DNA of 63,601 nucleotides, counting the filler, from Ministeria vibrans ATCC 50519 (lineage: Eukaryota > Protista > Filasterea), in the NCBI GenBank assembly GCA_943704425.1. It is 5 parts of 5 records of this genome, joined end to end, with 100 filler letters (N's around TTAATTAATTAA, not from the genome) between each part and the next. Parts side by side here need not be neighbours in the genome. Positions count along the whole stretch, not along the records: positions 1 to 20,181 come from CALSCP010000783.1; 4 more parts are not named here. One strand, 5' to 3'. The translations under genes and the position numbers were made by a program. This document shows, piece by piece, positions 15,608 to 19,451 of the stretch (its first letter is position 1; the number at the start of each line of letters is the position of its first letter). The notes below the pieces were generated by a model. It was given only the letters and a program-made list of their open reading frames with translations, did not search any database and was not told the DNA's origin.

Positions 15608-18600
15608 ATGAATATTACAAAAAAATTTGCTTTGGTAAAAAAAACAAAACTTCACGTGGCTTTTATTGTGTCTCTCACTCTCTCACTTCCGCTTTGTGTC
15701 TTACTGTCTTTCTTGCTTGTACGCTACCGGCTACGCTGCTTTTTCTTGGGGTAGTTGCGACGTCCGATTGGCGTTGCGCTTGTTCTTTTGGGCCTTGTAG
15801 CTTTTTCACTATATTTTTTCTCTGACAACAACAATGCCCCAGCTCGATCCACGCTGAGTCCGGCGACGCTAAGTGCCTCGCAAACAGCAGCAACCTCACA
15901 ATTCTCAAGCATGCCGTGGCTTCATCGTCAATTGCGACCTCTCGGGGCGGAGAAGGCACCGCTGACCAGCTCGACTGACACACGATTTTACAAGCGTGTG
16001 CCCGCGCGTCGTGCAGGCGAGTGCCGCCACAACATTGCCATTATTGGCTCGTCGGGCTTTATTGGGTCCCGTCTCCATGTTGAGTTGGCGCAACTTGGGG
16101 CCAAAGAGCGTGTGTGCGTCACGGGTTTTGACCGGGTGCCGCTCGACATTGGACTCGAGGTGGTCAACATGACGAGTGCTGCAATCCCAACAGAAGCCTT
16201 GTTGGCGTTTGACTCTGTTGTGTACCTTGGAGGTCTCACGGGACGCGTGGTGTGCGACGCCTACCCCAACAGGGTACAGTTTGAGAATGTCGACGACATT
16301 GTGGCGCTCGCGAAGCGCATGGAGCATCGGCAAACGCTCGTGTTCGCCTCCACCTCGGCCCTGCTGGAGGGCTACGGAGGCAACGCACAGGACGAGAAGG
16401 CTGAAATCAAAACGGTACTGCTCGACGGATATGCGGCGTCGTTGCAGCGACGAGAGATTGCCTTGCGTGCGCTTGCCAAGTCGGCGCCCGATACCACGCC
16501 TCGGCTGGTTGGCACTCGCTTTGGCACCGTTGTCGGCGTGTCGCCAAGCCAGCGCACCGACATGCTGCACATGGCGTTGGTACGCAATGCGTTTATGAAC
16601 GCGAGACTGCGCCTCACACACCCCGAGACGTACCGTGCCATGGTCTGGATTGACGACCTCGCCCGAGCGCTCGCGACCATTCTACTCACACCCGCTGCCA
16701 AGGTCAAGGTGTCAACGGGTCGCTTTGAGGTGTTTCACCTGACCTCCTTTCAAAACAACATTGCGGGAGCGGCCAACGAGGTCGCCGCCTTTATGGGCAT
16801 TCCAGTGGACGCCGTCTCGCACGACCCCAAACCGGACAATCTTGGCTTTTCCCTGCTTGCAGGTAAGTTTCTCAACGCCTATCCCTCGTTCGCCTACGAG
16901 GGTACCCCTCGCAAGGTTGTCAAGGCACTTATGGCGCACGGTCACCACGTCGTCATGGGCCGCGAGCTGGCGCAGCGCACTGGCCGCGAGTCTATTCCAT
17001 GTGTCGTGTGCGGCAGTAAAGACCTGATGACGGTGCTGGACCTCAAGACACAGCCGCTTGCCAACGATTTCCGCAAGACGCCTGCGGACGCAGAGCAGTG
17101 CGAGCGCTACCCGCTCAAACTCATGCGCTGTCGCAAGTGTCAACATTCGCAATTGTCATACGTTGTCGATCGCGGGCACCTGTTCAGCAAGTACCTCTAT
17201 CGCAGCGGCACAAGCTCAACCCTGGCCAATTACTTTGTGTGGCTCGCCAACAAAATTGACAACGAACGTCTGAGTCCCCCGGCGCGGCTCGCAATGTCAC
17301 TGAAGCCACGCAAGCCCAGTGTCGTCGAGATTGCATGCAACGACGGAACGCAGCTCGACAAGTTTTCCGCTATTGGTTGGCGCACGTACGGTGTTGACCC
17401 TGCCGCGAACATAGTTGAGCTCGCTCGTGCCAAAGGCCACAATGTCTTTGTGGCCTTTTGGGGCCAGGAGGATGTTGCAGGCCTTCCTGAGCCCGACGAC
17501 CTCGATGCTATTGTTGCCCAAAATGTTCTCGCGCACACTGACCATCCGCGTGAGTTCCTCCAAGCGTGTGCCAAAATCATGGGAGCTCGTACCAAGGCGT
17601 ACATGCAGACATCGCAGTGCGAAATGTACGGTACTGGACAGGTAAGACGTAGCCATCATAACGCACACAGAATGCTTCACACGCAAACGAATAAGTTTGA
17701 CACATTGCCAATAATACGAATATTAATTTTGCAACATTTTCAACTTTTAGTTTGACACGGTTTACCACGAGCACGTGTCGTTCTTTACGGCACACTCGTT
17801 CCGACATCTGGCAGAGCAGTCTGGACTGCGCATTGTAAACATGGAGATTACGCCGATCCATGGAAATTCGTGCTTGGTGACACTGATGCGGGCGGAGACG
17901 GGCTCGGGCAGTCACGAGGCGGCGCTTGTGAATGCCATTGAGAATGAGCGTTCGATGGGCATGGATAAGGACTGGTTCTATCTACAGTACCGTGGTCAAG
18001 CACAAGCAATGGGACGCTGGATGCATCGTCAGCTCAATGCGCTGCACGCGCAAAAATACGAAATTGCGGCGTACGGTGCGGCGGCCAAGGGCATAGTGCT
18101 CTTGCACTTTTTGCGGCTCTTCCCTGAGCGCACCTATGAGTTTTCGTTTGTCATTGACGACGCGGATCTCAAGCAGAACACGTACTGTCCCGGCACGTCC
18201 ATTCCAGTCAAGCCCACGAGTGCACTGTCGAGTCGCGCACCCGGGCCATTGGTGATTGTGGTGTTTGCATGGAACTTCTTGGCGGAAATCAAGAACCGCA
18301 TCCTGGACGCTCTTCCATCGGACACGGCCTTTCCCGTGCTTATTATGGTGCCCTATCCGCATCAACAGCTTATCTCGGTCGACATCAGCAGCCGTCGGAT
18401 GTCTGTTTTAATGACCAATCCGTTTGTGCCTCCTCAGCTGCCCAGCGGCACTCCTCCCACCAGCACACAGGTAAATTTGATTATAATAAGGATTACTTTC
18501 GTACCATGATGAGTTGGGGTTGTTGTTGCTGCTGTGGTTACGCTATTGTGGTTACTGTTATCGTTGTTATTAAATTTTCTCCTTTGCTATCAATATTAAT

Positions 18601-19451
18601 AATAATCATACTATTGTTGCGTTTGCAATATTAGCTCTCTATTCTCGATTAATTTTATTTTCTTAATATTATTGGTGCCGTGTTGGTGCCTGCACTTGTG
18701 GCTTCATTCGTCTGGTCGTTTGTTGAACTCCCCCTTCCCTTTCAGTGCTCAGTTTGTGTTGGTGTTTTCTTGACCTTCTCTTCTCGTTTTCTTTTGCCTA
18801 TCTTGCTCGGGATAGGTTGCGCTGGTGACATCGTTCCGCAACGCGGCGACACTGCTGCCACGATGGATTCGACACCACGCTCCCTTGTTTGACCGGGTTG
18901 TGTTGGTGGACATGGGGAGCACAGATGGGTCACGCGAGGTCTTGCGACGCGAGGCACCGAGCACATGGGAGGTGCGGGAGAGCGGGGAGACGGTGCAGCG
19001 CATTCTGGCTGAGTTGCCCCATGACATGTGGAAGGTGACGCTGACCGCATGCACCGACTACTTGGTATTTCCTCAGATGCATGAGACACTCGGGGCGCAC
19101 AAGGCAACTCGTAACCAGGTTGGCGTTCGCGTGCTCACAATGAACGGAGCAAACTTGTCGCTGCTGAAGCAGTACGAGAGTCTTCTTCTCCAACGCTCTC
19201 AGTACCGCATAAGCGAGAGGAAACCGCTGGTGATTTACCGTCGCGATTCAGGACAGTCCGCTGAGAGCAGCGACGTGTTTTTCGAGACGAAAGGGTTTGT
19301 GGGGAGCTTCACTGAGCGACAGGCAGGGGGCATCACGTACGACTTAGCATCGGTGTACATCAAACCTGAACGCGCCAAGTCGCCATTTCACGGCTATCAT
19401 GCTGTCTGGCAGAGTGTGTTTCAGGGAGTTTCTTTGTTCAAAGACGAATGA
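15608..19451 (+). CDS. Type II membrane fusion protein, paralog B: NAD-dependent epimerase/reductase + intact Zn-binding NDP-hexose C-methyltransferase + degenerate GT2-like domain. Exons 15608-15634, 15755-17641, 17751-18470, 18816-19451
   Basis: MNITKKFAL|LRRPIGVALVLLGLVAFSLYFF (TM); GSSGFIG, FASTSA, Y-A-A-S, RFGTVVGVSP; CVVC, QPLANDF, CRKC, YLYRSGTS, EIACNDG, NVLAH, FDTVYHEH, IHGNS, YGAAAKG, AWNF (TcaB9/TylC3-class C-methyltransferase signature); WIRHHAPLFD..DMGSTDGS. Confidence 0.88.

Follow-up and report, generated by a model that had tools for sequence, protein, structure and literature searches.

A predicted membrane-anchored fusion of SDR-like, sugar C-methyltransferase and GT-A-like modules in the filasterean Ministeria vibrans

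Why should a filasterean protist encode, in a gene with introns, a methyltransferase of the kind with which bacteria branch sugars, and what might that enzyme do in one polypeptide with two further modules behind a putative membrane anchor? To our knowledge, the C-methyl branched sugars that TcaB9/TylC3-type enzymes are known to make all belong to bacterial antibiotics or surface glycans. The question is raised by a locus, here called copy A, at positions 15608 to 19451 (plus strand) of the window, the whole 63,601-nucleotide stretch of Ministeria vibrans ATCC 50519 DNA that was analysed (GCA_943704425.1; five parts joined by filler). A search of the literature for eukaryotic or giant-virus sugar C-methyltransferases returned nothing relevant, and no description of the fusion was found in the literature searched. 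With moderate confidence, we read copy A as an intact nuclear gene for a type II-like protein with SDR, C-methyltransferase and GT-A-like modules, which would serve a branched-sugar route and was acquired already fused.

Gene model of copy A

The spliced model, predicted from sequence, has four exons and about 1,089 codons, and its product would run from a short basic N-terminal tail through one transmembrane (TM) helix, a Ser/Thr/Pro stem, an SDR-like domain and a TcaB9/TylC3-type Zn C-methyltransferase to a short GT-A-like module. The features of copy A and of its neighbouring paralogue, copy B, are as follows.

15608 to 15634, plus strand: predicted mini-exon 1, 27 nt, ATG, encoding MNITKKFAL, a basic cytosolic tail; donor GTAAAA at 15635
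15635 to 15754, plus strand: intron 1, 120 nt, phase 0, GT..polypyrimidine..TAG; acceptor TAG at 15752-54
15755 to 17641, plus strand: exon 2, 629 codons, with TM, stem, SDR-like domain, Zn domain and first half of the methyltransferase, from the open frame and Pfam
15767 to 15823, plus strand: predicted single TM helix or signal anchor (IGVALVLLGLVAFSLYFFS), Kyte-Doolittle 19-mer mean 2.34
15824 to 16033, plus strand: low-complexity stem, 33% Ser/Thr/Pro
16034 to 16954, plus strand: extended-SDR-like domain, with GSSGFIGS, GGLTGR, ASTSA and Y-A-A-S-L-Q-R-R-E; PF01370
17000 to 17185, plus strand: four-Cys Zn-binding domain, PF08421 at 60.9 bits (cut-off 31.3); aligned to 4rv9 (D-mycarose 3-C-methyltransferase) and 5t64
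17294 to 17641, plus strand: SAM-binding Rossmann core, with EIACNDG, GVDPA and AQNVLAH; class I methyltransferase Pfam models
17642 to 17750, plus strand: intron 2, 109 nt, GTAAGA..TTTTAG, phase 0
17751 to 18470, plus strand: exon 3, 240 codons, with the YHEH catalytic motif, the PF08484 C-terminal domain and YGAAAKG
18471 to 18815, plus strand: intron 3, 345 nt, GTAAAT..ATAG, phase 0
18816 to 19451, plus strand: exon 4, 211 codons and stop, shortened GT-A-like module
11761 to 15452, minus strand: copy B, head-to-head paralogue, exons about 15452-13554, 13491-12730 and 12657-11761, introns 13553-13492 and 12729-12658

The introns of copy A have GT..AG ends, and their removal restores the frame with spacing exactly as in intron-free homologues. 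At intron 2 the junction GQ|FDTVYHEH (...SQCEMYGTGQ|FDTVYHEH...) agrees with uninterrupted homologues, and an intron interrupts copy B and a third paralogue, copy C, at this position too; removal of intron 3, where copy B has a 72-nt intron, regains the family spacing between NPxxP and (H/S)FxN, here NP..(23 aa)..SF. Homologues of exon 2 are 44-52% identical across 85% of its length. The ATG at 15608 is usable solely via the predicted mini-exon, as the unspliced frame is closed by the TAG at 15752-54. We infer this mini-exon and its splicing, a step supported by an N-terminal hydrophobic segment that is kept in most homologues and in copy B on the opposite strand. Single exons served as queries in all database searches, alignments, folds and trees; the sole joined string was a 13-residue tail, used for the charge count.

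The three modules and their possible chemistry

By class, the middle module is a predicted complete TcaB9/TylC3-type, Zn-containing, SAM-dependent NDP-sugar C-methyltransferase. Two CxxC pairs (C416, C419, C459 and C462, invariant or almost so across the family), EIACNDG, YHEH and YGAAAKG are all present, EIACNDG lying opposite EIGSNTG / EIGCNDG of 4rv9 and 5t64, and the PF08484 domain, for which the cut-off is 23.5 bits, scores 94.6 bits here and 95.5 when the genome is scanned. Its only relatives among solved structures are TcaB9, the KijD1-type sugar 3-C-methyltransferase and D-mycarose 3-C-methyltransferase (E 4e-19 and 8e-19, the TcaB9 match to exon 3 being at 8e-19). In HMMER alignments YLYRSG, AQNVLAH and FDTVYHEH of copy A stand opposite the corresponding TcaB9/KijD1 residues, with the Tyr, the His and Y-H-E-H kept; we take the TcaB9 active site to comprise Y76, H181, Y222, E224 and H225. 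The earlier note's claim of a bacterial-type sugar C-methyltransferase in an intron-containing eukaryotic gene is borne out by these Pfam matches and motifs and by the splice junctions. The neighbours are ordinary cellular genes (GH59; FERM plus Tyr kinase).

The module upstream matches PF01370 Epimerase over residues 94-316 of the frame opening at 15755, and has both GxxGxxG and the catalytic Ser/Thr (GSSGFIGS and ASTSA, with G98, G101, G104 and S199-T200 conserved). The catalytic YxxxK dyad retains an invariant Tyr, but copy A has Leu in place of the Lys; throughout the fused clade the motif reads Y-x-x-S-L/M-x-x-R-E, with Leu or Met at the Lys position, whereas unfused viral relatives keep YxxxK. 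Catalytic competence of the module is uncertain, since the Lys is lost across the whole fused clade. A single-sequence search of the PDB gave E 0.85 at best; the best solved match of the family profile was 6vo6, over its full length and at E 1.7e-28, deposited as a 'putative sugar-nucleotide epimerase/dehydratease'. This structure shares the unusual LAALVGxxxC / LGGLTGRxxC stretch and, unlike the copy A clade, keeps YxxxK. We take 6vo6 to be C. jejuni Cj1427, a GDP-heptose C4-dehydrogenase. Cj1427 is described as a C4 dehydrogenase/oxidase whose product is a 4-keto nucleotide sugar, formed without dehydration (PMC10680097, PMC7949155). One unfused cassette of the three modules sits in a phage-like cluster amid NDP-sugar 4,6-dehydratase, DegT aminotransferase and TPP-enzyme genes, and as the 4,6-dehydratase is there a separate gene, the SDR module cannot simply be equated with it.

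The C-terminal module is, by modelling, a GT-A fold with an N-terminal nucleotide-binding half, and 'glycosyltransferase' is for it a fold-level label only. AF2 models of the module reach pLDDT 87-88 (88 for the short copy A version), and Foldseek places the family nearest to SunS, ThuS, GalS1 and SpsA at E 2e-7 to 1e-5, with TM-scores of only 0.4-0.5; for copy A the best matches are GalS1 (GT92), ThuS and SpsA at E 1e-5. PF13704 Glyco_tranf_2_4 scores about 29.8-29.9 bits on copy A (cut-off 27.5) and 20-25 bits on the canonical paralogue and viral members, no NCBIfam or PHROGs model matches the module, and a single-sequence PDB search with exon 4 found no matches. With GT2/GT92-type GT-A enzymes it has the fold and the N-terminal half (NE..LL..W..HH..FD..D.xSTD.S) in common; it differs from them in belonging to no curated family and in lacking the metal-binding DxD, which occurs nowhere in the family, (L/N)xTEF standing at that position and CTDY in copy A. 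Copy A has additionally lost the family motifs SRFxH, GRH and PWPE..RKLQI, the C-terminal third being deleted. The fusion of SDR and GT domains to the methyltransferase, as the earlier note had it, stands as regards the domains and motifs that it named, all of them present at its coordinates, with the qualification that the SDR is without its catalytic Lys and the GT is truncated and without DxD.

Taken together, the modules could form a short route to a branched sugar. The SDR module would carry out redox chemistry at C4, either making the 4-keto nucleotide sugar for the methyltransferase or re-reducing it afterwards, its NAD possibly being permanently bound as in epimerases; the methyltransferase would methylate C3 or C5, the carbon beside the keto group, and so yield a branched-chain sugar nucleotide; and the GT-A-like module might then use this product. 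It is also possible, if unlikely, that the reaction of the TcaB9-fold enzyme is not C-methylation of a 4-keto nucleotide sugar at all but O- or N-methylation of a sugar or other acceptor, the SDR and GT-A modules being non-catalytic domains for nucleotide-sugar binding or scaffolding. The clade-wide loss of the SDR Lys, the family-wide lack of DxD and the weak Pfam scores of the C-terminal module all fit such a protein, as does a 2022 review of giant-virus glycans in which the terms C-methyl, branched-chain and C-methyltransferase do not occur. Against it, the Zn site and every residue aligned to the TcaB9 active site are kept, the modules co-occur in sugar-nucleotide clusters, and the SDR retains its Tyr, Ser and GxxGxxG together with an invariant, clade-specific Arg and Glu two turns past the Tyr (Tyr+7 and +8), so that it looks remodelled rather than dead.

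Anchor, spread and paralogues

Copy A has the sequence features of a type II signal anchor, namely a short positive N-tail, one TM, a stem and a large C-terminal part, in so far as the predicted mini-exon holds. The TM is flanked by a net charge of +4 N-terminally and of 0 C-terminally, a bias that predicts a single-pass, type II-like protein oriented N-in/C-out; the signal-anchor-like N-terminus proposed earlier, a hydrophobic helix with positive charges on its N-side, is supported at this level. Synthesis of C-methyl sugars in the lumen is a reasonable supposition, and the lumenal orientation, the C-methylated glycans and the lumenal SAM and NAD(P) envisaged in the earlier note stand as predictions. 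Cytosolic catalytic domains, or a TM that is left untranslated, would instead give a soluble or tethered cytosolic sugar-nucleotide enzyme as in the viral relatives, with its product imported by a transporter, a reading that we consider improbable. The three-domain viral fusions are unanchored, an in-frame Met downstream of the TM could yield a soluble protein, NAD(P)H and SAM are cytosolic, and a reductase consuming NAD(P)H stoichiometrically would be difficult to supply in the Golgi lumen. On one protist metagenome contig, two paralogues flank a gene of the TPT family (a Pfam family that includes nucleotide-sugar transporters), an arrangement that agrees with the lumenal reading but fits cytosolic synthesis and import equally well. 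Yet the open frame runs through the TM, a TM-equivalent segment is present in most eukaryote-type homologues (and in none of the viral ones), and it is common to copies A and B despite about 33% identity, all of which, with the charge bias, speaks for lumenal domains. UDP-xylose synthase and similar type II enzymes set a precedent for an SDR in that compartment. Import of SAM into the plant Golgi likewise provides a precedent for lumenal SAM use (bioRxiv 10.1101/2021.07.06.451061).

Giant viruses, rotifers and algae also have the fusion, and its anchored version turns up in unrelated eukaryotes: the source protist, bdelloid rotifers, a chlorarachniophyte and a green alga. For the source protist, a single-exon HSP70 has animals as its best named matches, at 70-73% identity, which points coarsely to Holozoa. 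Among IMG/VR loci, the three modules were found as separate neighbouring genes at about 50, as SDR-methyltransferase fusions at 16 and as SDR-methyltransferase-GT fusions at six; the contigs with separate genes are probably phages, and the three-domain fusions among public viral contigs lie in giant-virus MAGs, without an anchor. In the maximum-likelihood tree, copy A, bdelloid rotifers, Lotharella and many metagenome proteins form a TM-anchored eukaryote-type clade (support 100/99), which joins its sister, the giant-virus three-domain clade, at 95/91. A GTDB genome scan returned matches to the methyltransferase only, 26-31% identical, in Patescibacteria, the scan relying on family-specific peptide patterns that may miss bacterial fusions. 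Since the anchored clade is sister to soluble giant-virus three-domain fusions, we conclude that copy A came in as a ready-made fusion and that its membrane anchor and introns are later additions. Separate adjacent genes in viral loci substantiate the operon-like unit envisaged in the earlier note, and distribution and tree likewise point to the horizontal spread that it suspected. Its proposal that the pathway collapsed into one polypeptide within this eukaryote does not hold, two- and three-domain fusions being already viral and the anchored form a single clade common to distant eukaryotes; and of the kinship that it drew with bacterial enzymes, the TcaB9/TylC3-type class stands, but outside eukaryotes copy A is closest to giant-virus and phage-type sequences rather than to the actinobacterial enzymes that the note named.

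Copy B, 33-36% identical to copy A, shows the opposite pattern of conservation: its SDR and methyltransferase motifs are dead, with 83 of the 185 conserved columns kept, and its C-terminal module is complete. Neither an in-frame ATG nor a plausible 5' mini-exon was found for the start of copy B, the ATGs at 15410 and 15404 being out of frame. Copy C, the canonical copy, lies on separate contigs (C905/C70). With the GT-A-like module of copy A eroded, the transfer step would more plausibly be supplied by copy B or copy C. Copy A could itself be a decaying duplicate, with copy C the only functional one, and indeed its C-terminal module is truncated with motifs lost, its identity to copy C, 90% and 71% in the methyltransferase, is down to 41% in the C-terminal module, and its start codon relies on a mini-exon; this we regard as very improbable, given that copy A keeps 177 of the 185 SDR and methyltransferase columns conserved at >=90% (SDR 64/66, Zn domain plus methyltransferase 56/60, methyltransferase C-terminal domain 57/59), has canonical splice sites and neither stops nor frameshifts over four exons, and retains a short C-terminal module that is still confidently modelled. 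A viral insert or contaminant is ruled out by the spliceosomal introns, the neighbour-like GC and the cellular flanks.

Beyond our preferred account of an anchored, already fused branched-sugar enzyme lies a bolder version, which we offer as speculation that is unlikely to hold. Copy A would be a self-contained lumenal machine in which C4 oxidation of an ordinary nucleotide hexose by permanently bound NAD, C-methylation of the adjacent carbon, C4 re-reduction and handover to a GT-A-like transferase follow one another, placing C-methyl branched sugars on protist, rotifer and giant-virus glycans; giant viruses would have spread the cassette between eukaryotes; and complementary loss would have bound copies A and B into an obligate pair, A making the sugar and B transferring it.

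Significance and comparison with known systems

Anchored eukaryotic forms, soluble giant-virus forms and unfused phage-like cassettes together imply a predicted, not yet sought branch of eukaryotic and viral glycan chemistry. The loci also provide a domain-fusion series, from separate genes through two- and three-domain fusions to the anchored form, an example of complementary degeneration within a divergent gene pair (copies A and B) and, in the clade-wide remodelling of the SDR dyad, a case open to mutagenesis.

The architecture of copy A resembles that of UDP-xylose synthase, the plant UDP-GlcA 4-epimerases and similar type II SDR enzymes of the Golgi, in which a signal anchor and a stem likewise join a short cytosolic tail to an extended-SDR domain that lies in the lumen with NAD bound; in contrast to copy A, these are single-domain, vertically inherited eukaryotic genes that keep YxxxK. 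Chlorovirus PBCV-1 A064R, which O-methylates rhamnose, is a giant-virus precedent for sugar transfer and methylation fused in one polypeptide. This protein builds glycans with three domains, two of them glycosyltransferases and the other a methyltransferase (PMC9614988). Its domain families are unrelated to those of copy A, and it includes neither an SDR nor a Zn C-methyltransferase. The TcaB9/KijD1/TylC3-type enzymes (3ndi, 5t64, 4rv9) share with copy A the Zn-ribbon N-domain, the SAM Rossmann core with E-I-x-C-N-D-G, Y-x-E-H and PF08484; whereas those are soluble, stand-alone bacterial proteins of about 410 residues in antibiotic or surface-glycan pathways, their counterpart here, about 30% identical, is intron-split and lies in the middle of a predicted membrane-anchored protein of about 1,089 residues.

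Catalytic core and gene structure of the fusion

The methyltransferase at the centre of the fusion gene studied here (copy A) is a clear member of a known C-methyltransferase family. Pfam domains on copy A run in the order NAD-dependent epimerase/dehydratase (SDR), PF08421 (‘putative zinc binding domain’, 60.9 bits), a class I SAM methyltransferase core, PF08484 (‘C-methyltransferase C-terminal domain’, 94.6 bits) and Glyco_tranf_2_4, the last of these marginal (29.9 bits, cut-off 27.5). The methyltransferase had no matches among solved structures other than TcaB9, the KijD1-type sugar 3-C-methyltransferase and D-mycarose 3-C-methyltransferase (E 4e-19 over its first half, 8e-19 over its second). 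Alignments to these structures retain the counterparts of the TcaB9 active site (the Tyr of YLYRSG, the His of AQNVLAH, and Y-H-E-H) as well as both CxxC pairs of the Zn site, so the motifs on which an earlier note had based its class assignment were correctly listed. When columns conserved at ≥90% were compared across 42 full-length eukaryote-type homologues, copy A kept 64 of 66 (SDR), 56 of 60 (Zn-binding and N-terminal methyltransferase part) and 57 of 59 (C-terminal methyltransferase part); both modules are clearly under purifying selection.

Copy A comprises three long, mutually in-register open frames on the plus strand at 15608-19451, with the following features:

15608, plus strand: ATG of a predicted 27-nt mini-exon, with donor GTAAAA at 15635 and acceptor at 15754
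15755-17755, 17775-18509 and 18825-19451, plus strand: open frames
17642-17750, plus strand: intron 2, starting GTAAGA and ending TTTTAG, phase 0
18471-18815, plus strand: intron 3, starting GTAAAT and ending ATAG

Excision of intron 2 yields ...CEMYGTGQ/FDTVYHEH..., identical to the uninterrupted sequence of homologues, and excision of intron 3 restores the 23-residue spacing from NPxxP to (H/S)FxN seen in the family. Upstream, the frame is closed by a TAG at 15752-54, and the mini-exon is the sole connection between ATG 15608 and the main frame. We infer that the two are joined in this way, a start supported by a hydrophobic segment within the open frame (IGVALVLLGLVAFSLYFFS, Kyte-Doolittle mean 2.34), by a similar segment conserved in the paralogue on the opposite strand, elsewhere only ~33% identical, and by a strongly hydrophobic 19-mer lying 30–75 residues upstream of the Rossmann motif in most full-length eukaryote-type homologues. 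Net charge flanking the helix is +4 on the N-side and 0 on the C-side, and Ser/Thr/Pro make up 33% of the 67 residues that follow; in sequence, these features are those expected of a type II signal anchor. Searches, fold predictions and related analyses were run on single exons. AAT/AAC-type simple repeats, reading as poly-Asn in some frames, lie downstream of copy A at 19490-19657 and 20058-20180.

Remodelled SDR and GT-A-like modules

The SDR and the C-terminal module each modify the picture drawn in the earlier note. The SDR retains the Rossmann motif (Gly-x-x-Gly-x-x-Gly), the Ser/Thr and the Tyr, but the Lys of the catalytic dyad is replaced by Leu; the entire clade carries Y-x-x-S-L/M-x-x-R-E instead of YxxxK, which is kept by unfused and some two-domain viral relatives. 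The SDR family profile matched best, over its full length, to 6vo6 (E 1.7e-28), deposited as a putative sugar-nucleotide epimerase/dehydratase and which we take to be C. jejuni Cj1427. Cj1427 is a C4 dehydrogenase that converts GDP-heptose to its 4-keto form (PMC10680097, PMC7949155).

By predicted fold, the C-terminal module is GT-A-like: that of the canonical paralogue was modelled by AF2 at pLDDT 87, with SunS/ThuS, GalS1 (GT92) and SpsA as top Foldseek matches (E 2e-7), and exon 4 of copy A at pLDDT 88, matching GalS1 (E 1e-5). The DxD motif is absent family-wide, with (L/N)xTEF at its position whether the module is fused or unfused. In copy A the module is also shortened (211 residues versus about 300–330 in the family) and lacks the conserved SRFxH, GRH, PWPE..RKLQI and GxQH stretches. 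No model for it was found in NCBIfam or PHROG.

Paralogues and genomic surroundings

Three copies of the fusion gene occur in the genome (29.7 Mb, 2,860 contigs). A single-exon HSP70 from the same genome is nearest to HSP70s of animals (70–73% identity), and one may reasonably guess, though no more than guess, that the host is a unicellular animal relative. Copies A and B are arranged head-to-head, with the frame limit of copy B ~120 bp from the copy A ATG, and two further genes neighbour the pair:

11761 to 15491 at most, minus strand: copy B, open throughout its three exons, which end at 13554, 12730 and 11761
8554-11605, minus strand: galactocerebrosidase-like GH59 gene of two or more exons, encoding catalytic, central and lectin domains, directly downstream of copy B
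2321-6469, minus strand: FERM-N and split Tyr/Ser-Thr kinase domains, probably a single multi-exon FERM-kinase gene, a hint that the host is holozoan or amoebozoan

Copy B shares the positions of both introns 2 and 3 of copy A, with a TAT-rich run in its intron 2 (12660-12725). Of the conserved columns it retains no more than 42/66 (SDR), 20/60 (Zn-binding and N-terminal methyltransferase part) and 21/59 (C-terminal methyltransferase part), and it lacks GGLTGR, the SDR Tyr, NDG, the active-site His and YGAAAKG, while its C-terminal module is complete, with every motif missing from copy A. No in-frame ATG was found ahead of its TM segment, those at 15410 and 15404 both being out of frame; the start could lie in an unrecognised 5′ exon, be obscured by an assembly indel or be non-AUG. 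Copy A retains the sugar-modifying half and copy B the transferase-like half, and this complementary retention suggests that the divergent pair may work together. A comparable arrangement occurs on a protist metagenome contig (L092:5163-13177), where a canonical fused gene and a paralogue whose SDR and methyltransferase motifs have degenerated stand in tandem, separated by a gene of the TPT family, which includes nucleotide-sugar transporters, and adjoined by an Armadillo-repeat gene.

In copy C, which is divided between contig C905 and, for its 5′ part, the 1.8-kb contig C70, every module is canonical and the N-terminus again carries a hydrophobic segment; identity to copy A falls from 90% at the end of exon 2 to 71% across exon 3 and 41% over the C-terminal module. 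The 5′ half is at L105 (G000:C70:1-1779), and the 3′ half on C905 follows an N gap. Some 85 residues are missing from the C-terminal part of the SDR, with a frame change at 1262-1265 of C70; a deletion, an intron or a mis-assembly might account for this.

Relatives, origin and proposed mechanism

Searching with exon 2 returned ~65 proteins (39–52% identity), most of which share the architecture and are 1,020–1,095 residues long. Named sources are the bdelloid rotifers Adineta and Rotaria, Lotharella and Tetradesmus; the remainder are metagenomic. Matches in IMG/VR numbered 163 stretches. Among 80 IMG/VR loci examined, ~50 encode the SDR (265–310 aa) and methyltransferase (400–445 aa) as separate, abutting genes, often with a GT-A-like gene (245–310 aa) in the order GT-SDR-MT or SDR-MT-GT; 16 encode an SDR-methyltransferase fusion of ~700 aa, and six a three-domain fusion of ~1,010 aa without N-terminal extension, five of them labelled as giant-virus MAGs. 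One unfused cassette, on a 120-kb contig (L044:3232-12237), is part of a cluster of sugar-nucleotide genes that also encodes a second methyltransferase, a DegT aminotransferase, an NDP-sugar 4,6-dehydratase, split TPP-dependent E1-like subunits and a GHMP kinase; together they resemble a pathway to a branched sugar bearing many modifications. Another adjoins a tail-fibre chaperone domain, one giant-virus locus encodes collagen-repeat and Fn3 proteins, and in the ESM Atlas the stand-alone GT-like protein groups with Uroviricota proteins; such context fits the viral labels. A scan of GTDB species genomes, restricted by peptide patterns, returned only methyltransferase-only matches, in Patescibacteria.

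A maximum-likelihood tree was built from the exon-2-equivalent region (69 rows by 521 columns; copy B and one very long viral pair excluded). In it, all TM-anchored sequences form one clade (100/99, ultrafast bootstrap/SH-aLRT) and giant-virus three-domain fusions another (100/100). Both group with a two-domain viral row (L012) at 95/91, the remaining viral two-domain fusions falling outside. The anchored clade includes a 770-aa SDR-methyltransferase without the GT-like part (L011:5893-8202) from a 192-kb, 25% GC IMG/VR contig, either a virus with a captured anchored gene or a low-GC eukaryote contig classed as viral. As the root was set by assumption on YxxxK-type fusions, transfer of the fusion from virus to eukaryote is no more than likely. 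A quick tree including copy B placed it beside copy A with weak support.

Full-text literature searches turned up no publication on this C-methyltransferase class in eukaryotes or giant viruses, terms for C-methyl or branched-chain sugars do not occur in a 2022 giant-virus glycan review, and database entries for the homologues are named ‘unnamed’ or ‘hypothetical’; as far as could be found, the anchored, SDR- and GT-A-fused form is therefore undescribed. Architecture, conservation, module co-occurrence and anchor of the fusion are observations; the mechanism proposed here is weakest at the altered SDR dyad and at the transferase module, which has no DxD; these are also its most interesting features. 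TcaB9-type enzymes require a keto group adjacent to the methylated carbon, and the SDR, nearest to a C4 dehydrogenase and fused directly upstream of the methyltransferase, would be the obvious module to supply that group or later reduce it, with the GT-A-like module using the methylated product. If NAD were kept bound, as in epimerases, the SDR and methyltransferase together would be redox-neutral and might function in a lumen that has no supply of pyridine nucleotides. Golgi SAM import and lumenal SDR enzymes of type II topology both have precedents in plants and animals, and a preprint deals with plant Golgi SAM transporters.
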